Shown here in pieces: positions 3,603 through 50,547 of a stretch of DNA of 64,000 nucleotides. A program made the position numbers and the translations under genes. Position 1 is the stretch's first letter. Every line of letters starts with the position of its first letter. This DNA comes from Hyalangium minutum. Lineage in GTDB: Bacteria > Myxococcota > Myxococcia > Myxococcales > Myxococcaceae. The notes beneath the pieces are model-generated. The model made no database searches. It was not told the origin of the DNA and saw only the letters and a program-made list of their open reading frames with translations. Location of the stretch: NCBI RefSeq assembly GCF_000737315.1, contig NZ_JMCB01000019.1:62001-126000 (forward strand). The letters are read 5' to 3'.

Positions 3603-5132
3603 TCACCGCCGCTCGTCGCGAGTGGCGGTGATGTGCCGGTAGGGGATGACGCGGACGAGCTCATCCACTGTCATCAGCCCCGCGGCGATCTTCTCCATGG
3701 CGTCATCCACCAGCGTCTTGAAGCCGCGCTCGCGGGCGTACTTCCGGAGCTGCGCGTTGTGGGCTCCCGCGACGATGAGGTCCTGCATGCCGGGATCCAC
3801 CAGGAGCAGCTCGTAGATGCCCACCCGCTTGCGGTAGCCGGTGTGGTGGCAGTGGTCGCAGCCCCGGCCCTTGCGCAGTTGGATGCCGTCCAACAAGCGG
3901 CCGAGCAGTATCTTCTGCTCCTCGGTGGGCGTATAGGGCTCCGAGCACTTCTCGCAGATGCGACGCGCGAGCCGCTGAGCCAGGACGGCCAACAGCGCGT
4001 CCGCGATGTCCGTGTTGTCCAGCTCGAGTCCTCGCAATCGGCCAATGGCCCCCACCGAGTCCGCCGTGTGGAGCGTGCCCAAGACGATGTGGCCTGTGCG
4101 GGCGGCGTTGAGCGCGGTGCTGCCCGTCTCCAGATCGCGAATCTCGCCCATCAGCAGGATGTTGGGATCCTGGCGCAGCAGGGCGCGCAGCAGCAGGGGG
4201 TACGGCATCTGCGGGCTGACCTGCTTCTGATTCACCTTGGGGACGAAATACTCGATGGGGTCCTCGGCAGTGATGATCTTCCGGCGGCCGTCATTGAGCT
4301 GGGCCAGCGCCGAGTAGAGCGTGGTGGTCTTCCCGCTGCCGGTGGGCCCGGTGACGAGCACCATGCCCTCGGGGTTGTTGAGGAGCTGGAGGAAGGTGCG
4401 CTGCAGTTCCTCGGACATGCCCAGCTGGACCACGGGGAGGAGCCCCGCCTGCGCATCGAGGATGCGGATGACGACATCCTCGCCTGCGGGGCTGGGCACT
4501 ACGCTCACGCGGTAGTCGATGACCTTGCGGTGGCCCTCGCCCCGCTCGATGACAGCGCGGATGCGCCCGTCCTGGGGCTTGCGGTGCTCGGTGATGTCCA
4601 ACTCCGCGAGGATCTTGATGCGGTTGATGACCTCACGAACCGACTCCGGATCCATGTCCGTGTACATCTGGTGGAGGATGCCATCGATGCGCAGGCGCAA
4701 GTCCACGTCGCCCGGGTAGCTCTCGATGTGGATATCCGAGGCCTTCTTCTCCACGCCCATGGCGAGGATGTTGTCCACGAGTTCCACGGCGGTGGGCTGG
4801 TGGCGCGACGGAGGACGCGGGCGGATGATGAGGTCCGCTTCGATGCGCTCTCCGGCGCCGAAGCCCGTCTCCAGGGCGGACTCCACCTCATAGCGGTTGA
4901 GCCGCACGGTACGGATGGGTCGCTCCAGCAGGTCGCCGATCCGCGAGAGGAGGTTGGGGTTGTCCGGATCCAGCATGCCCACGGTGACCGTGGCGTGAGG
5001 AGCGGCGGGGTCCACCTTGCCGAGCACCACCGCATGGTGACGGCGGCAGAAGGGCTCCGGCAGCAGCCGCATGGAGTTTCGATCGAGCGAGTGTTGGGAG
5101 AGTTCGGAGAAGACGTCGGAACCTTGCGACAT
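3603..5132 (-). CDS. GspE/PulE/PilB family secretion ATPase
   Basis: ASDIHIE, RKPQDGR, Walker A GPTGSGKTT, EDPIE Asp box, LRQDP..GEIRD, TLHT His box, CEKC...CDHC zinc site. Confidence 0.92.
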   Translation of the reverse strand: MSQGSDVFSELSQHSLDRNSMRLLPEPFCRRHHAVVLGKVDPAAPHATVTVGMLDPDNPNLLSRIGDLLERPIRTVRLNRYEVESALETGFGAGERIEADLIIRPRPPSRHQPTAVELVDNILAMGVEKKASDIHIESYPGDVDLRLRIDGILHQMYTDMDPESVREVINRIKILAELDITEHRKPQDGRIRAVIERGEGHRKVIDYRVSVVPSPAGEDVVIRILDAQAGLLPVVQLGMSEELQRTFLQLLNNPEGMVLVTGPTGSGKTTTLYSALAQLNDGRRKIITAEDPIEYFVPKVNQKQVSPQMPYPLLLRALLRQDPNILLMGEIRDLETGSTALNAARTGHIVLGTLHTADSVGAIGRLRGLELDNTDIADALLAVLAQRLARRICEKCSEPYTPTEEQKILLGRLLDGIQLRKGRGCDHCHHTGYRKRVGIYELLLVDPGMQDLIVAGAHNAQLRKYARERGFKTLVDDAMEKIAAGLMTVDELVRVIPYRHITATRDERR

Positions 5133-5207
5133 GCCCGGAAGGCTATACTGGGAAGCGCTCGGGCACAGGTCCTTCCTCGGGCCTCACTCGGCGTGCGCCC
5201 TTCGAGC

Positions 5208-5453
5208 TCAGTTGTTCAGCTGAAGGTCCGAGAGGTGCGACGCGCTCGAAGCCTGAACGAGCCATCGGTCGAGAATCGCCGAGTCCGTACAGGACAAAAT
5301 GAGATGCCGGGACTTCTCGTCTACTTCGACGCCCCTTGCAGCCAATACTTGCAGGACCGCGAGAGCCCGTCCCTGCGCTTGCCCCTCAGCCAGCCCCTTG
5401 AGCCAGCCTTGTTGATGCCCTTCCTCGCGAAGTTCGTCCGCATAGGACTTCAT
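5208..5453 (-). CDS. Putative nested small protein from an internal start in rpn (RpnS-like, 81 aa)
   Basis: In-frame ATG at 5453 preceded by GAGGAGG 5 nt upstream (minus strand GAGGAGGACTTG-ATG). Confidence 0.55.
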   Translation of the reverse strand: MKSYADELREEGHQQGWLKGLAEGQAQGRALAVLQVLAARGVEVDEKSRHLILSCTDSAILDRWLVQASSASHLSDLQLNN

Positions 5454-6218
5454 CAAGTCCTCCTCTCGCTCCTTACCTGCCACGGATTGTAACACTCGCC
5501 GGAGCGTCTTGCGTGCTGCTGGCGGCCCCACCTCGAACAGGTAGTGAACCACCGCACGCAACTCCTCCAGCCCCTCTGCCTCTGCATGAATCTCGGCCAC
5601 CAGCGCCTTCCATCCCTCCAGCCGCCAAGAGAGCCCTTCGTCACGCCCATGGCGCAAGAGGAGAAACGCCAATCGCGCCAACGGAGGCCCCGGGCGCGCT
5701 CGCAGCGTCTCCTCCCGCTCGGCCGTCAAGTCATCCAGCAGGTACTCGAAGCGCGGCACCAGGGCCCGCCATCGCTCCAACTCTCCTTCGTCACTGGGCA
5801 GTTGGAACAGAGCCTCCACCCGGCGTGGTGCCGTCCATCCCGCTTCTCCTCCGTGGTACATGACCAGTGGCACCACGACGGGCAGCACTTCGCTCGCCGG
5901 GTGCTCCTTGCGCCAGTGCTCCAGGTGACGCACCACGTACCGCAACATCCTCAACGCCATCCACCGATCGACCGAGGATTGGTGCTCCAGCAAGAGGTAG
6001 AGCAGGAGTGGCTGACCATCCTGGAGCTGAGCCGAGAACAACAAGTCGCTCTGGCTCTCTCTCAGTTCCGGGTCCACCACGCTGACGGGCTCACGGCGCA
6101 AGCTGGTCCAGTCCACCCGTGACACCACTTCCGGCGGCAGGACAGCGCGCAGCTCCGCAGCGGCCCGCTCGGGGTGGCTGAAGGTGAAGCGGGCGAACAG
6201 ATCGTGAGGACCCGGCAT
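5208..6218 (-). CDS. Rpn/YhgA-like recombination-promoting nuclease (PD-(D/E)xK-like)
   Basis: HDLFARFTFSHP, SDLLFS, LLLEHQS, PVVVPLVMYHG, EYLLDDL, and a C-terminal EG..QG/L.RW tail. Confidence 0.9.
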   Translation of the reverse strand: MPGPHDLFARFTFSHPERAAAELRAVLPPEVVSRVDWTSLRREPVSVVDPELRESQSDLLFSAQLQDGQPLLLYLLLEHQSSVDRWMALRMLRYVVRHLEHWRKEHPASEVLPVVVPLVMYHGGEAGWTAPRRVEALFQLPSDEGELERWRALVPRFEYLLDDLTAEREETLRARPGPPLARLAFLLLRHGRDEGLSWRLEGWKALVAEIHAEAEGLEELRAVVHYLFEVGPPAARKTLRRVLQSVAGKEREEDLMKSYADELREEGHQQGWLKGLAEGQAQGRALAVLQVLAARGVEVDEKSRHLILSCTDSAILDRWLVQASSASHLSDLQLNN

Positions 6219-6232
6219 GACGGGCCGTGATC

Positions 6233-6249
6233 AGCATGCTGCGTGCCAA
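6233..6249 (-). promoter_or_regulatory. Sigma54-type -24/-12 promoter upstream of rpn
   Basis: Minus strand TTGGCACGCAGCATGCT, with exact GG-N10-GC spacing. Confidence 0.55.
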
Positions 6250-6332
6250 CACAGCGGCTGAGGACCAAGTCCCTGCATTTCCTCGGCGCTTGTACTCCTG
6301 GAACGAAAATCCGAGCACGCCACGAGCGCAAG

Positions 6333-6352
6333 GAGTCCACGGCCGTGGACTC
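6333..6352. repeat. Perfect 20-bp palindrome GAGTCCACGGCCGTGGACTC
   Basis: Sequence equals its reverse complement. A partial third half-site GTCCACGGCCG follows. It lies between the kinase stop and the rpn promoter. Confidence 0.8.
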
Positions 6353-6375
6353 GCCGTCCACGGCCGGAGCCTGCA

Positions 6376-7779
6376 TTACTTCGGTTCCGAAGTAGGAGGT
6401 CGTCCTGCGGTCCACATGGGCCAGTAGCAACCGTCTCCCCATTCGTACGCTTCATCCCCACAGGGCGGTTTCGCGTCCGCGAAGCGACCCCAGCACCCAC
6501 CGTTGATCGCCACCGCTGGGTACTTGCAGGGAGGCTGACGCTGCCCCGGTAAGGGCTTCTTCGGCATCTCTAGGGCCACGCCCCCGGGTCTCGACCCGCC
6601 CATGTCTACCGTCGCCCGCGCCGAGATCGCCGTGTCCGCCAGTTCCGAGGTGCCTGCATCCACGCCCTCTTCGGCGCGTGGAGCCTGCGCCACGCGCTGC
6701 CGTGCCTCCCCTCGGGCGGGCAAATACCGATCCACATTCCACACCAGGAGCGTCACCCCCGCCCCCACCACAGCCGCCAGCCACTCTTGCCGCCACCGCC
6801 ACAGCTCGTTCAGGACCCGCTCTCGAAGCAGGTAGCGCACAGGAGGGGGCTCCTTCCATCCCCTCAGCAGCCGATCCGCACGGCGCCCCGCCTTCCTCTC
6901 CGCTCGCTTCAATGCCTTCACCGCCTGCGCCGCGCTGCCCCGGTCCTCAGGCCGCGACGACATCATCTTCAGAATGACCGCCTTCAGTTCCTCGCCCGCA
7001 CCCTCCAGCGCCTCGGGCGGCACTGCCACCCGGTGTTCGAGCCAGGCGCTGCCCTCCAGGTTATCCCAGTCCGGATCCGGCAGCGGCTCCGGGAAGCGGC
7101 CCACCACCACCCGCCATGCCGTCATCCCCAGCGCGTACACGTCATCCGCAGGAGTGGACTCGTAATGCGCCTGGCGCTCGTCGCGCTTCTTCCACTGAAA
7201 GCGCAGCGACTCCGGGCTCCAGTACTGCGGCGTCCCTGGCGGCTCCGGCGAGCGCGTCAGCCGTCTCGCGCCCCGGTAGTTTCCCGAGCCGAAGTCCAGC
7301 AGCACCGCGCTCCCATCCCTGCGCACCAGGATGTTCTCCCCCTTCACGTCCCGGTGCACTCCCTCCAGCGCGTGCAGTGCCGCCAATGCGCTGGCCACCT
7401 GCGCCAGCGCCCTCACCGCTTCCCTCCACGTCCGCTCCGGTCGCGCGGCCCACCAGTACAAGTCCTCCCCTTCGACCCAGCGCATCACCGCGTATGGGTA
7501 CTTCCTCCCTCCTGGTCCCCTCCACCATCCCCGGTCCAGCAGCTCCGGCACATGCGGGTGCTTCATCCGCGACAGCAGCTCCCACTCCCTCTCGAAGCGC
7601 GCATCCATCGGGTACATCGCCATCTTCAGCGCCACGGGCTCCCCGGATTCCCTCCCCACCCTCTTCGCCCGGTACACCGCGCCGTACGAGCCTCTCCCCC
7701 GGCCTCTCTCCACGCGCCACTTGCCTACCACCGTCCCCTCGGGCAACGCGTCCGGCTCGACCCAAGACTCTCGCTCCAC
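6376..7779 (-). CDS. Ser/Thr protein kinase with TM segment and Cys-containing C-terminal domain
   Basis: GRGSYGAVY, VALK, HRDVKGENI, DFG, DDVYALG. TM WLAAVVGAGVTLLVW, C-terminal PPCK..AINGGCW..CYWP. Confidence 0.9.
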   Translation of the reverse strand: MERESWVEPDALPEGTVVGKWRVERGRGRGSYGAVYRAKRVGRESGEPVALKMAMYPMDARFEREWELLSRMKHPHVPELLDRGWWRGPGGRKYPYAVMRWVEGEDLYWWAARPERTWREAVRALAQVASALAALHALEGVHRDVKGENILVRRDGSAVLLDFGSGNYRGARRLTRSPEPPGTPQYWSPESLRFQWKKRDERQAHYESTPADDVYALGMTAWRVVVGRFPEPLPDPDWDNLEGSAWLEHRVAVPPEALEGAGEELKAVILKMMSSRPEDRGSAAQAVKALKRAERKAGRRADRLLRGWKEPPPVRYLLRERVLNELWRWRQEWLAAVVGAGVTLLVWNVDRYLPARGEARQRVAQAPRAEEGVDAGTSELADTAISARATVDMGGSRPGGVALEMPKKPLPGQRQPPCKYPAVAINGGCWGRFADAKPPCGDEAYEWGDGCYWPMWTAGRPPTSEPK

Positions 7780-10835: not shown

Positions 10836-11156
10836 CGTTGAACCCCCGCCGCGAACCCGCGGCCATGAAGCGTTTCCAGCCCGGAGCTCTCCCGAGGTCC
10901 GGACCCGTGATTGTCGGCCAAGACTCTCGGAAGTTGCCCACGCTGGCACGGTTTCCTGGGAAAACACCGTTAACTCCAGAGCGGAAAGCACGGGCACACA
11001 GTCCTGGAAGCACAGGTCGCGGGCCCCTCGTCTCGGCGCGGGTCCCCCCGTCAGCGGACGGGTCCTCCCGCGCCGGCCGTCCCGCTCTCCCTTGGCTCAC
11101 GTACCGTCTCTGTTGAACCGATTCGAGAGCGCTTCTCTTCGGTAGGATGGTCTCGG

Positions 11157-12725
11157 ATGCCGCACCCTCGCCCCGTGCCCCCCGTCCTCGACGAGGAGGC
11201 GCTCGTTCATCAGTTCCCAGGACTCGACAGGCTCGCGCTCGGTGCCTTCTATACACCTGCGCCCCTCGTGGAACGCACGTTGGAGCTCGCACTCGCACAG
11301 GTGCGCCAGGCTCCGTTGACCGTCGTAGACCCGGCCTGCGGCGCGGGCGCCTTCCTCACCGCCGCATCCCGCATGAGGCCCCGCGCCCAACTCTGCGGCC
11401 TGGAGCTGTTGCCCGAAGTGGCCCGCCTCTGCCAAGCCCGCGTTCCCACCGCGGAGATCCATGTCGGTGATGCACTGCGTGGGGGACTGGTACCCCTACT
11501 CAAGAACATCCCTCCTCCCCACCTCGAGCTCTGGGTCGGAAACCCGCCCTACAACGGCACCTCCGCCCTCCTGAAGGACCGCGCCGCCTGGTCCCACCTC
11601 CGCGCCCTCATGCCGCTCGCACTGCCTCCCGGGACGAGCCTGCGCGATGACTTCGCCTTCTTCCTCCTAGTCGCGGCGCATCGGCTCTCTACCCGTCCCG
11701 GAGTGCTCGCCTTCATCACCCCCTCCAGCCTCCTCGACGCCTTCCTCTACGCGCCGCTCCGGCAAGCCCTGCTGGGCACGCTGAAGCTCCGCTCGGTGGT
11801 AGACCTGGGCTCCGGTGCCTTCAGCGGGACCCAGGTGCGCACCTGCATCACCGTCTGGTCTTCCCTGCCCGGCCCCACCGAGCCTGTCTCCTTCGAGAGG
11901 GACGGCCAGCGCTCCACCTTCACCCCGTTGCCGCCCGAGTGGCGGCTCGCCCCCACGCCCACCGAAGCCGCGGCGCTCGACTCCCGCTGGCAAGCCGCAG
12001 GAGAGCCCCTCACGACGCTCGTCCCCATCAGCTTCCCCGGCGTGAAGACCCGCTTCGATGAGCTGCTCGTGGACGACGACCCGAAGCGCCTCCTCGAACG
12101 CCTGCGCCACTTCGCCCGGACTCCTGCGAGCCGGCTGCCCGCCTTCGCCCGAGCCCACGGCATTCCCTCCGCGCTCCTGCCCAAGCTCCGGGCTCTCAAG
12201 GATGGCCCCGCCCTCCGCGTGGACGCCGCGAACGTGCGCCCTTTCTTCCGCTACGCCGGCGCACGCCACCGAGGCGCCCTGCCCCCCGAGGCCCGCGCCT
12301 CCTGCTACCTCGACCGCCGGCTCATCCCTCGCGGCGATCACCGCCTGCGAGGCCCCTATGATCCGCACCTCGGCGCCGTGAAGCTCCTCTTCAACGTGCG
12401 GGAGCTGCCGCTCTCGGCCGCGCTCCTCGAAGAGGAAGGCTGTGTCCACGACCACCGCCATGCCCGCTTTGCGCCGCTCTTCGTGCCCCAACGGGTCCGC
12501 GATGAAGGGCTCTCCGTCACCCGCACCGCCCACACCGTGGAGGAGCTGGGACCCCTCGTTCCCAACCTCTCCCCCCGAGGGCTCGCCTGGGCCGCGCGCA
12601 TCGGAGGACCGCGCCAGGTCTTCCGCGAGCTCGTGCGCTTCCTCAACGGCCCCGATGTGCAGGAGCGCTGGGCCCCTGTCTTCGGCGCCTCCCGTGTCGT
12701 CCCCGTCCCACTGCCCTCGGACTGA
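11157..12725 (+). CDS. N6-adenine DNA methyltransferase (orphan)
   Basis: FYTP, motif I DPACGAGAFL, motif IV GNPPY, FITPSSLL. No nuclease or helicase motifs seen. Confidence 0.85.
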   Translation: MPHPRPVPPVLDEEALVHQFPGLDRLALGAFYTPAPLVERTLELALAQVRQAPLTVVDPACGAGAFLTAASRMRPRAQLCGLELLPEVARLCQARVPTAEIHVGDALRGGLVPLLKNIPPPHLELWVGNPPYNGTSALLKDRAAWSHLRALMPLALPPGTSLRDDFAFFLLVAAHRLSTRPGVLAFITPSSLLDAFLYAPLRQALLGTLKLRSVVDLGSGAFSGTQVRTCITVWSSLPGPTEPVSFERDGQRSTFTPLPPEWRLAPTPTEAAALDSRWQAAGEPLTTLVPISFPGVKTRFDELLVDDDPKRLLERLRHFARTPASRLPAFARAHGIPSALLPKLRALKDGPALRVDAANVRPFFRYAGARHRGALPPEARASCYLDRRLIPRGDHRLRGPYDPHLGAVKLLFNVRELPLSAALLEEEGCVHDHRHARFAPLFVPQRVRDEGLSVTRTAHTVEELGPLVPNLSPRGLAWAARIGGPRQVFRELVRFLNGPDVQERWAPVFGASRVVPVPLPSD

Positions 12726-47879: not shown

Positions 47880-48764
47880 TCAGCTGTGCAGCGCGAAGCT
47901 GCGCATGGACAGCGTTCCGTGATGAAAGCCCTCGAATACGGGGGTAACCCGGTCCTCGGCGAGGGCAGCGCCCAGGACGAAATACAGCGGAAACAAGTGC
48001 TCGGTGCTTGGATGCGCCAGGCGCGCATTCGGTGCGGTGGACCAAGCACGAAGGCCGGTGAAGTCCCGAGACGACAGCCCCTGCGCCACCCAGCCATCGA
48101 AGGCCTGGGCCCAGGGCTCGGCGGGGGCGTACTTGTCCTGGAACACCACGCGGCGGAGGTTGTGGGTGATGCCACCGCTGCCCATGAGCATGACGCCCTG
48201 GGAGCGCAGCGGGCGCAGCGCCTCGCCCATGCGCGCCACGTCCTCGGCCGTGGCACCGCGAGGCATGGACAACTGCACCACCGGAAGCCGCGCCGCCGGC
48301 AGCGCCAGCCGCAGCGGCACCCACGTGCCGTGGTCCAGCCCGCGCGCAGGATCCTCCACCGCCGGAAAGCCCGCGGACACCAGCCGGGAGGCCACCTCGC
48401 GCGCGAGCACGGGCTCGCCGGGGCACGGGTAGGTCAGCTGGTAGAGGGGCTCGGGGAAGCCACCGAAGTCATAGATGAGCGGCGGGGCCTCGCTCGCGGT
48501 GACGCGCACACCGCCCGCCGTCTCCCAGTGCGCGGAGACGACCACGAGGGCCCGCACCTCCTGGAGCCCGTCGGCGAAGGACTTCAGCGCCTGGGGGTAG
48601 GCGTCCGAGTCGAGCGCCACCATGGGCGAGCCATGCGAGACGAAGAACGCCGGGGCCACGGAGCGACCTGCCACCTTCTTGCCTCCTGCGGCCTCCGCGA
48701 CACCCGCCACGCCCACAGCGGCGGCGGCCTGCAGAACCTCGCGTCTATGGAGTTCGGAGCTCAC
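47880..48764 (-). CDS. DODA/YgiD-type extradiol ring-cleavage dioxygenase (LigB-like)
   Basis: FVSHGSP, VSAHW, YDFGGFP..LY.L.YP, LDHG.WVPL, GSGGITHNL, AHPSTEHLFPL. The start is either GTG 48764 or a later GTG (VAGRS) behind AGGAGG. Confidence 0.92.
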   Translation of the reverse strand: MSSELHRREVLQAAAAVGVAGVAEAAGGKKVAGRSVAPAFFVSHGSPMVALDSDAYPQALKSFADGLQEVRALVVVSAHWETAGGVRVTASEAPPLIYDFGGFPEPLYQLTYPCPGEPVLAREVASRLVSAGFPAVEDPARGLDHGTWVPLRLALPAARLPVVQLSMPRGATAEDVARMGEALRPLRSQGVMLMGSGGITHNLRRVVFQDKYAPAEPWAQAFDGWVAQGLSSRDFTGLRAWSTAPNARLAHPSTEHLFPLYFVLGAALAEDRVTPVFEGFHHGTLSMRSFALHS

Positions 48765-48778
48765 GAGAGAGGCTCCAT

Positions 48779-48794
48779 AGCAACCCTCGCGCCA
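48779..48794 (-). promoter_or_regulatory. Sigma54 -24/-12 promoter for the dioxygenase-yceI operon
   Basis: Minus strand TGGCGCGAGGGTTGCT, exact GG-N10-GC. Divergent from a sigma54 activator. Confidence 0.8.
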
Positions 48795-48906
48795 GGCTTC
48801 CAGACACTCCAAGTCCTTGAATTCTCTTGCAGGAGAACTTGACGGCATGCGAGGAGGCTCTCAGATTGATAGTGTTCTGCATCGTTCTGGAAGGAGCCAA
48901 GGGCCC

Positions 48907-50547
48907 ATGGCCGAGGGACTGCAGCTGGACTTACGGGAGTTGCTGAGCTTCGAGCCGGAGGGTGGGCTCATCCACTTTGCCGGGCAGCGAGCGCTGCTGA
49001 TGGACGCGGTGGTGTTGGGGCTGCTGCGCAAGGAGCTGATTGGGACGGTGGGGATGACGGCGGCGCGGGGGATTCTCACGCGGCTGGGCTTCGCTCACGG
49101 GTGGCGCACGGCGGAGGCGATGAAGACGGCGTTCCCGTGGCCGAACGAGGCGTCATGGAGGCGGGCGGGCGGCCGGCTGCACACCCTGCAAGGGCAGGTG
49201 CTCTTCGAGCCGGTGGAGCGCAGGCCGGAGGACGGGCCGGAACCGTTCGCGGAAGCGCTGTGGCGCGAGTCGTACGAGGCCGAGCAGCACCTGCTGCACG
49301 TGGGGCGAGCGGATCAGCCGGTGTGCTGGAGCCTGACGGGATTTGCCAGCGGGTACATGAGCTACTGCCACGGCAAGGCCATCTACTGCCTGGAGACGAA
49401 GTGCGTGGGGAAGGGAGACGCGGTGTGCCAGATCCTCGGCAAGCCGGGCGAGGAGTGGGGGCCGGAGTGCGTGGAGGCGCTGCGCTTCTACGAGACGCAG
49501 TGCATGGAGGGCACGCTGGGGCAGGTGACGGAGGCGCTCAAGCAGGCGGAGCAGAAGCTGCGGGTGAAGCGGCGGACGCTGGCGCGGGTGACAGGGGATA
49601 CGGAGGACCCGTCGGGGATGGTGTCTCGGACGGAGGAGATGAAGCGGGTGCTGGGGCTGGCGCGGCGGGCGGCGAAGGTGGACTCGACGGTGCTGATTAC
49701 CGGCGAGAGCGGCGTGGGCAAGGAGCGGATTGCGCGGCTCATCCATGATGAGTCGGGCCGGGCGCCCAAGGCCTTCGTGGCGGTGAACTGCGCGGCGGTG
49801 ACGGAGAGCCTGCTGGAGAGCGAGCTGTTCGGACACACGAAGGGCGCGTTCACGGGGGCGACGCACGATCGGCCGGGCCTGTTCGAGGCGGCGAGCGGCG
49901 GCACGTTGTTCCTGGACGAGGTGGGCGAGGTGCCTCCGGCGATGCAGGCCAAGCTGCTGCGGGCGCTGCAGGAGAAGGAGGTGCGGCGGGTGGGCGAGAA
50001 CCAGAGCCGCAAGGTGGACGTGCGGGTGGTGGCGGCGACGAACCGGCACCTGCTGGAGGAGGTGAACGCGGGACGGTTCCGGCAGGATCTGTACTACCGG
50101 CTGCGGGTCATCGAGCTGCGCATCCCTCCGCTGCGCGAGCGGCGCGATGACATCCTCCCGCTGGCGCGGCTGCTGCTGGCGGAGGCGACAGAGCGGCTGG
50201 GGCGGCGGGTGTCCTCATTCTCGCCGCAGGCGACGGACCAGCTGTTGCGCTACCCCTGGCCAGGAAACGTGCGCGAGCTGGGGAACGCCATCGAGCGCGC
50301 GGTGGCGCTGTGCGAAGGCGCACGGGTGGAGCAGGAAGACTTGCCCGAGGAGGTGCGCGCGGCGCCGCCCACGTTCTTGCCAGGGGCCACACCCCGGACG
50401 TTGGAGGACATGGAGCGCGAGTACATCCTCGCGGTGTTGGCGCGGAACGACGGCAACCGCTCGCGCACGGCGGAGCAGTTGGACATCGGTCTCGCGACGC
50501 TCTACCGCAAGCTCAAGCAGTACGGGCACCCAGAGGCACCGAACTGA
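48907..50547 (+). CDS. XylR/DmpR-type sigma54 activator (XylR_N-V4R-AAA+-Fis HTH)
   Basis: [16 protein letters not shown]4R Cys cluster, [55 protein letters not shown]. Confidence 0.95.

Follow-up and report, generated by a model that had tools for sequence, protein, structure and literature searches.

The closest described relatives of the gene treated here are the Rpn genes of Escherichia coli, which encode, besides the full-length protein RpnL, small C-terminal proteins, RpnS, whose synthesis begins at an internal start (Zhong et al., 2023, PNAS, PMC10400941, and a commentary on this work). RpnL alone is toxic and cleaves DNA, whereas RpnS binds and blocks RpnL and suppresses growth inhibition, SOS induction and DNA cleavage in E. 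coli (PMC10400941). The small product of rpnA, RpnAS, is lost upon mutation of K240/E241/M244; it is a three-helix bundle that dimerizes through its long first helix, and this helix carries, 8-20 residues past the internal methionine, four-residue repeats of variable number that set specificity (PMC10400941). Free-standing RpnS copies exist as well, for example in the rpnE-ypaA arrangement, a plasmid-borne Rpn guards against some phages, and a gene from C. difficile also gives a small product (PMC10400941). Here we describe a myxobacterial relative, located on the minus strand of a stretch of 64,000 nucleotides (nt) from Hyalangium minutum (assembly GCF_000737315.1, contig NZ_JMCB01000019.1, positions 62,001 to 126,000), hereafter termed the window. 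A first-pass annotation of this stretch had cited the RpnL/RpnS pair, the internal start and phage defence in enterobacteria as established, which accurately reflects the published work, and had proposed that the same logic operates in the myxobacterial copy. All sequence tests that we ran support this proposal, and we consider it likely that the locus is an RpnL/RpnS module in which a single gene gives rise to two products.

The full-length open reading frame (ORF), termed rpnL, extends from an ATG at position 6218, the first start following an in-frame stop, to a stop at 5208 (Table 1). By alignment, it encodes an Rpn nuclease with an intact active site. The protein matches Pfam family PF04754 (Transposase_31, YhgA-like) with residues 4-214 (E=5.2e-43, 147 bits as compared to a cutoff of 21), Rpn models are its top matches in NCBIfam, and BLASTP aligns it over the full length with RpnA from E. 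coli K-12 (27% identity, E=2e-24). In this alignment RpnA residues D11, D63, E82, Q84 and R94 correspond to D6, D58, E78, Q80 and R90 of the window protein, all of which are invariant or nearly so among 36 homologues. In RpnA, mutation of D11, D63, E82 or Q84 abolishes all phenotypes, while only the recombination phenotype is lost in the R94A mutant (Kingston et al., PMC5350276). Assignment of the ORF at 5208-6218 to the Rpn nucleases in the first-pass annotation is thus borne out. The AlphaFold model of the full-length protein (predicted local distance difference test score, pLDDT, 74.5) yielded weak matches in Foldseek (best E=0.02), the best of which are PD-(D/E)XK endonucleases. A homologue search of the databases with the window protein returned 603 matching proteins. 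The best 120 of these (61-74% identity) stem from Archangium, Cystobacter, Hyalangium, Vitiosangium and Myxococcaceae, and most of them go by the names 'predicted transposase YdaD' or 'Rpn family ... putative transposase', in line with the earlier remark that Rpn paralogs are commonly labelled transposases.

The nested start proposed for a second product withstood re-reading in every detail: an in-frame ATG, the A of which lies at 5453 and which specifies Met256 of the full-length protein, is preceded at a distance of 5 nt by the Shine-Dalgarno (SD) sequence GAGGAGG and opens a frame for 81 residues, or about 9 kDa, that begin MKSYADELREEG.... It had further been placed exactly at the head of the variable tail, and indeed the Pfam domain ends at residue 214 and variable four-residue repeats set in 11-12 residues past Met256. 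Taken alone, the single sequence is not significant. Within the window, which has a GC content of 68.5%, we determined the chance level from 41 coding-like ORFs, in which a motif of the GGAGG/GAGGAG class is present 3-10 nt upstream of 4 of 273 internal in-frame ATGs (1.5%), and as the window rpn gene contains four internal ATGs the chance of encountering such a motif amounts to about 6%.

The case for the nested start is a comparative one. A scan of one genome per species led to at least 141 confirmed rpn loci; DNA was compared for the best 80 of these, such that the set analyzed consists of the window gene and 80 related myxobacterial genes (L001-L080), with a median nucleotide identity of 76%. 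An ATG is found at the aligned position in 80 of the 81 genes and one codon later in the remaining gene, L080. On the protein level, the equivalent of Met256 is kept in nearly all of the 120 database homologues and resides in an almost invariant E-E-L-M motif. GGAGG occupies positions -10 to -6 relative to the internal ATG in 79 genes; conservation of the SD among paralogs had been suggested as a check in the first-pass annotation, with its lack as grounds for refutation, and the proposal stands. Codon -4, which specifies Ala, Thr, Val or Ser, ends with G in all 78 four-fold degenerate cases, as compared to backgrounds of 40% GCG among Ala and 42% ACG among Thr codons in the same genes, and this column ranks first among 191 four-fold columns. 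Codon -3 is GAG throughout (81/81), as opposed to 79% of the Glu codons elsewhere, and codon -2 varies among Glu, Asp, Ala and Val and still has G as its first base in 80 genes. Fixed synonymous third positions combined with an amino acid-changing codon -2 argue that it is GGAGG as a nucleotide sequence, rather than the protein, that is under selection. When redundancy was controlled for by using one representative per cluster at 80% identity (14 clusters), the ATG was present in 14, the SD in 13 and the extended -10 element described below in 13 representatives. The position of the start is shared with E. coli: Met256 aligns with M244 of RpnA, and the GAG within the SD corresponds to the codon for E241, the E. 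coli rpnA sequence at the internal start reading AAGGAG-AGTTTA-ATG.

A second conserved element, the extended -10 promoter-like sequence TGTTACAAT, precedes the nested gene. The pattern TGnTAnnnT is located 41 nt before the internal ATG in 78 of the 81 genes and has just one other match in the 82.8 kb that these genes comprise. Its TA is provided by a rare Leu codon, TTA or CTA, in all 81 genes, while these two codons account for 1.9% of Leu codons elsewhere. A Val (GTG) or Met (ATG) codon contributes the TG and a Ser TCN codon the last T, and the codon preceding the latter within the element is preferentially CAT, AAT, CGT or GAT instead of a synonym ending with C. A bldA-like control exerted via a fixed rare TTA codon was considered and rejected, because TTA and CTA alternate; what is fixed is the TA dinucleotide, plus the flanking TG and T. 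The rpnS transcript would start about 7 nt downstream of the element, near 5479, and its predicted leader of about 26 nt would carry the SD. Folding of the mRNA, predicted in windows of 50 nt, is weakest in the entire gene at the internal start (mean of -10.2 as compared to about -16.7 kcal/mol elsewhere), where the GC content is also at its minimum. Weak mRNA structure is typical of genuine initiation regions. Taken together, selection maintains the internal ATG, the SD and the -10 element. In the window copy only, AGGACUU, which includes part of the SD, can pair with AAGUCCU (rpnS codons 2-4) and would leave the AUG in the loop. This candidate for a regulatory hairpin (5440-5461) was dropped, as the pairing is absent from the homologues and the region is the least structured one.

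The predicted small protein has repeats of the kind described for RpnS. Its four-residue repeat tract begins at residue 12, has Gly at each fourth position and is part of the predicted long first helix. The distance between the internal Met and a conserved Leu (L292) ranges from 24 to 64 residues among homologues (36 in the window protein), the deviation from the window protein being a multiple of four for 194 of 201 homologues. The full-length model places two short helices after a long one (249-294), and the 81-residue protein modelled alone (pLDDT 88.8) likewise consists of three helices comprising residues 4-39, 46-54 and 58-69. A database search with this small protein yielded three short proteins only. 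On one metagenome contig (L082), a free-standing duplicate of the small gene (656-895) lies downstream of the rpn gene (2-439); it starts at the same Met with the sequence GGAGG-ACGTG-ATG and has fewer 12-nt repeats than its rpn neighbour. It thus resembles the free-standing RpnSs/DUF4351 proteins (PF14261) such as E. coli YpaA with respect to its position downstream of rpn, its Met and SD and its deviating repeat number. The window differs from the YpaA case in that it is devoid of a free-standing copy, and its 81-residue sequence reaches no Pfam model. The duplication on contig L082 begins only about 8 nt ahead of the GGAGG. Another apparent free-standing small gene, P0122 (L081), was rejected because it is the tail of a frameshifted rpn gene: in L081 (3312-4330), a frameshift splits rpn into ORFs for 232 and 109 residues that overlap by 10 nt, representing either a pseudogene or an assembly error.

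The start of rpnL is of a different kind. No convincing SD was found before the first ATG in any of the 81 genes. Instead, the pattern TGG-N9-TGC is located 14-20 nt from this ATG in all of them, with a family consensus of TGGCCCG-N4-(A/G)TGCT, which is reminiscent of the sigma-54 consensus TGGCACG-N4-TTGC(T/A) quoted for Myxococcus xanthus promoters (PMC9765219). Every gene of the set scores at least 9 out of 12 against the sigma-54 consensus, while this holds for 30 of 1163 random windows of 60 nt from the same loci. A strict 16-mer occurs 73 times in the 1.08 Mb of these loci and 66 of these occurrences fall on the upstream position of rpn. Sequence around the motif is not conserved, i.e. 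upstream similarity among the 81 copies is confined to the motif. As compared to the targets of the enhancer-binding protein Nla28 and other sigma-54-dependent genes in M. xanthus, the -24/-12 element in the window matches the consensus as well as or better than the promoters listed (PMC9765219), but its distance from the start codon is unusually short. If the C of the GC is taken as position -12, the rpnL transcript would start near 6222 and have a leader of about 4 nt (about 4-6 nt across the genes), such that a nearly leaderless message is predicted. All in all, we lean towards regarding the -24/-12 motif as a sigma-54 promoter. A conserved sigma-54-type element combined with the lack of an SD at the rpnL start is new in comparison to the known RpnL/RpnS systems, and our literature searches brought up no report on Rpn genes in connection with sigma-54 or with myxobacteria.

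Two motifs were found upstream of subsets of the genes. The inverted repeat CGTCTC-N6-GRGACG resides at -68 to -71 from the TGG of the -24 block in 14 of the 81 copies, with a background of 0.007 per 400 nt, and is a candidate enhancer-binding-protein site. The copies concerned, in which the repeat lies at about -100 from the rpn ATG, are L002, L004, L006, L016, L017, L037, L054, L060, L066, L069, L071, L072, L075 and L080. The other motif, GAAGGTGTCAGAGGAYTCGT, precedes about 16 of the rpn paralogs (background 0-1), frequently as a tandem array of two or three units. It may be bound by a regulator or represent a small repeat element. Upstream regions containing it include those of L008, L014, L020, L021, L023, L027, L031, L050, L054, L056, L069, L071, L078 and L079, and the window features a loosely similar sequence, CGGATTTTCGTTCC, at about 6312-6299.

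Table 1. Features of the rpn locus in the window (coordinates are window positions)
Feature	Position	Strand	Basis or remark
rpnL, full-length Rpn (YhgA-like, PD-(D/E)XK) nuclease gene	5208..6218 (stop included)	-	ORF and translation, 336 aa
Nuclease (Transposase_31) domain, residues 4-214	5577..6209	-	Pfam match
Codon for D58	6047..6045	-	Alignment to RpnA
Codon for E78	5987..5985	-	Alignment to RpnA
Codon for Q80	5981..5979	-	Alignment to RpnA
rpnS, nested in-frame gene for 81-aa C-terminal protein (predicted antitoxin)	5208..5453 (stop included)	-	Internal ATG
Shine-Dalgarno GAGGAGG for rpnS	5465..5459 (GGAGG core 5463..5459)	-	5-nt spacer ACTTG to ATG
Extended -10 promoter-like element TGTTACAAT (TGn + TACAAT)	5494..5486	-	Motif conservation
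Four-residue repeat tract GHQQ GWLK GLAE GQAQ GRAL	5361..5420	-	RpnL residues 267-286, RpnS residues 12-31
Sigma-54-type -24/-12 element TGGCACG-CAGC-ATGCT	6248..6233	-	11/12 in comparison with consensus
Perfect 10-bp hairpin GGCCGTGGAC-GGCGA-GTCCACGGCC	6341..6365	-	10 nt past the stop of the upstream kinase gene

These features can be combined into the following model. The rpnL message would be transcribed from the sigma-54-type promoter, fired only by an enhancer-binding activator, and would be poorly translated; toxicity is expected of its product, a PD-(D/E)XK DNA endonuclease of 336 residues. From TGTTACAAT, a second, short message would originate that presents a strong SD and the ATG at 5453 to ribosomes and directs the synthesis of the helical RpnS, which is identical with the C-terminus of RpnL and would be made in excess from its own message. 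By homology with RpnA, the long first helix of RpnS is predicted to pair with the same helix of RpnL, thereby blocking the nuclease, and the repeat number may decide which RpnS fits which RpnL such that cross-neutralisation among the five to nine or more paralogs of a genome is avoided. As the antitoxin would be made independently, the toxin-to-antitoxin ratio would be set at initiation, and by homology the module may limit phage. The RpnL/RpnS system itself is already known, and the window gene would represent a further case, given that Zhong et al. argued for a broadly conserved co-expression of RpnL and RpnS. The likeness to E. coli RpnA-E and RpnP2 includes the Pfam family, the catalytic residues, the homologous internal start and the SD that covers the same Glu codon. 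It also extends to four-residue repeats, to the lack of transposon ends and to the presence of many paralogs. The intragenic promoter that was measured in E. coli has a candidate counterpart here in the form of a motif, and the arrangement of one long and two short helices has one in the form of a prediction. Differences exist as well: the window protein is only 27% identical to RpnA, its small product has 81 residues as opposed to 49 in RpnAS, and E. coli rpnA is preceded by an SD, GAAGGA, and lacks a -24/-12 motif, whereas the window rpnL has a sigma-54-type element and no SD. What we may add to the picture is a comparative case from myxobacteria, an intragenic extended -10 element and a probable sigma-54-type, SD-less toxin start.

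Other explanations of the nested gene have to be weighed. It is very improbable that there is no separate product at all, i.e. that Met256 and the neighbouring acidic residues are constrained on the protein level and that the SD is a by-product of GAG-rich codons in a high-GC genome. GAG does make up 79% of Glu codons, and by chance a comparable SD precedes about 1.5% of the internal ATGs in the window, but neither accounts for G in 78 of 78 cases at codon -4, for a codon -2 that switches between Glu, Asp, Ala and Val and yet starts with G in 80 of 81 genes, for the rare TTA/CTA codon that is fixed in all 81 genes or for the retention of TG where Val is replaced by Met at residue 242. The minimum of RNA structure exactly at the internal start and the free-standing copy in L082, which begins at this very Met, point in the same direction. 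More serious, though still unlikely, is the idea that the nested protein is real but serves as a required partner or regulator of the nuclease, or as a DNA-binding autoregulator, instead of as an antitoxin. The evidence from conservation, RNA structure and repeats speaks for selection for a separate product and not for a certain role of this product, HHpred detects a likeness of RpnS to helix-turn-helix motifs, and Cas11d, which arises from an internal start in cas10d, is needed by Cascade (Zhong et al., PMC10400941). On the other hand, the window gene is homologous to E. coli Rpn and has its internal start at the same position, RpnS is inhibitory there, and variation in repeat number fits the specificity mechanism demonstrated in E. 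coli. We give hardly any credence to the notion that the annotation as an insertion-sequence transposase is correct and that the copies have spread by transposition. While many copies per genome, a GC content at third codon positions (GC3) of 0.76, below that of the neighbours, and the names in the source databases would agree with it, neither terminal inverted repeats nor flanking direct repeats surround the window gene, upstream conservation among the 81 copies ends at the -24/-12 motif, there is no known autonomous transposase of this fold, and Zhong et al. did not detect defined ends (PMC10400941).

A different question is whether the upstream motif is a promoter. TGGCNCG-N5-TGCT could also be a repressor operator or a 5' RNA element with transcription originating from further upstream, a plausible though doubtful alternative. 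It derives some force from the lack of a universal activator site, from the unusual leader of about 4-6 nt that the promoter would entail and from the palindromic GCATGC that forms part of the motif in many copies. Against it stand the agreement of both blocks with the sigma-54 consensus in exact GG-N10-GC spacing in 81 of 81 genes, the lack of an SD between motif and ATG, the lack of any Rfam match and the presence in 14 of 81 genes of CGTCTC-N6-GRGACG at -68 to -71, the usual place for an activator site. If the motif is a sigma-54 promoter, as we are inclined to believe, the Rpn paralogs of Archangiaceae/Myxococcaceae might form a sigma-54 regulon, in which toxins are silent until an activator fires and antitoxins are continuously made from sigma-70-type promoters. 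We offer this extension tentatively, as a possibility that is somewhat less likely than not.

A number of observations weigh against the two-product module or call for caution. Both transcription starts, the synthesis of RpnS, toxicity, neutralisation, dependence on sigma-54 and phage defence are features that we infer. The third codon positions of the 81 genes are not saturated, with a median identity of 63%, so that counts over these genes exaggerate the number of independent events. A promoter scan for two hexamers returned nothing in the gene, i.e. no -35 hexamer accompanies the internal -10 element. The scan for promoters and terminators demands a -35 hexamer and a T-run, which explains its empty result, and extended -10 promoters usually lack an evident -35. 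With regard to structure, phmmer retrieved only a chance match for the window protein among PDB sequences and did not retrieve the RpnAS crystal structure. Foldseek returned nothing significant for the model of the 81-residue protein, the RpnAS crystal structure included, so that the three-helix likeness to RpnAS is one of predicted secondary structure only. Pfam and NCBIfam scans of this part gave nothing meaningful either, and DUF4351 was not reached. In contrast to E. coli Rpn genes, the window gene is situated outside any defence island. No PADLOC model matches it. Flanking genes, all of which share its orientation, encode a Ser/Thr kinase (6376..7779) and an ATPase of the type II secretion/type IV pilus type (3603..5132), and further neighbours specify a DUF4476 protein, a ceramidase, an N6-methylase-like protein and a Cu/Zn superoxide dismutase. 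As to the sigma-54 part, enrichment analyses for 8-mers and dyads uncovered subset motifs only and no activator site common to all copies, and the window copy itself contains neither the inverted repeat nor GAAGGTGTCAGAGGAYTCGT.

Should the module be confirmed, the annotation of a large group of myxobacterial 'transposases' (at least 141 loci and 603 database proteins) would be corrected to two-product nuclease/inhibitor modules. The gene within the gene is backed by comparison, namely by constraint on synonymous sites, a rare codon that is fixed and a local minimum of RNA structure, and the same approach can be transferred to nested genes for which ribosome profiling is lacking. A sigma-54-type toxin start that is opposed to a separate antitoxin promoter and SD offers a testable explanation of what sets the ratio of toxin to antitoxin, a question left open by Zhong et al. 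If the regulon reading is true, release of the nuclease would be governed by the initiation of transcription and translation in addition to the dissociation of a complex, which would answer, in one clade, how RpnL is unleashed.

The genomic setting of the gene may contain hints to its origin. Its GC content is 64% and its GC3 of 0.76 (0.68 in the nested part) is low in comparison to 0.80-0.95 for the 41 coding-like ORFs in the window. Acquisition from a foreign source and constraints on the nucleotide level would both be compatible with these values. Neither inverted nor direct repeats flank rpn within 4700-6900. Distant homologues (27-33% identity) reside on plasmids from Leptospira and Serratia and in a few phages. 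Among the best 80 loci, several Archangium genomes are represented with five to nine rpn copies each, and the paralogs are partly scattered and partly clustered locally, with L031 and L050 being about 4.3 kb and L024 and L034 about 10 kb apart.

Upstream of rpn, the perfect hairpin at 6341..6365 may be a terminator or insulator of rpn that lacks a T-tract, or a regulator site. The terminator scan missed it because there is no T-run. The hairpin arm CCGTGGAC is repeated directly after the hairpin. Rfam returned nothing above chance. The window contains an ORF for an N6 DNA methylase-like protein (10974-12722, plus strand) at a distance of about 5 kb from rpn. It also harbors two further strict sigma-54-type matches, one at 50162-50177 on the plus strand and the other at 48779-48794 on the minus strand. 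The latter (TGGCGCG-AGGG-TTGCT, 11/12) is located near the 5' end of an ORF in the same orientation (47880-48860) and may be a real promoter.

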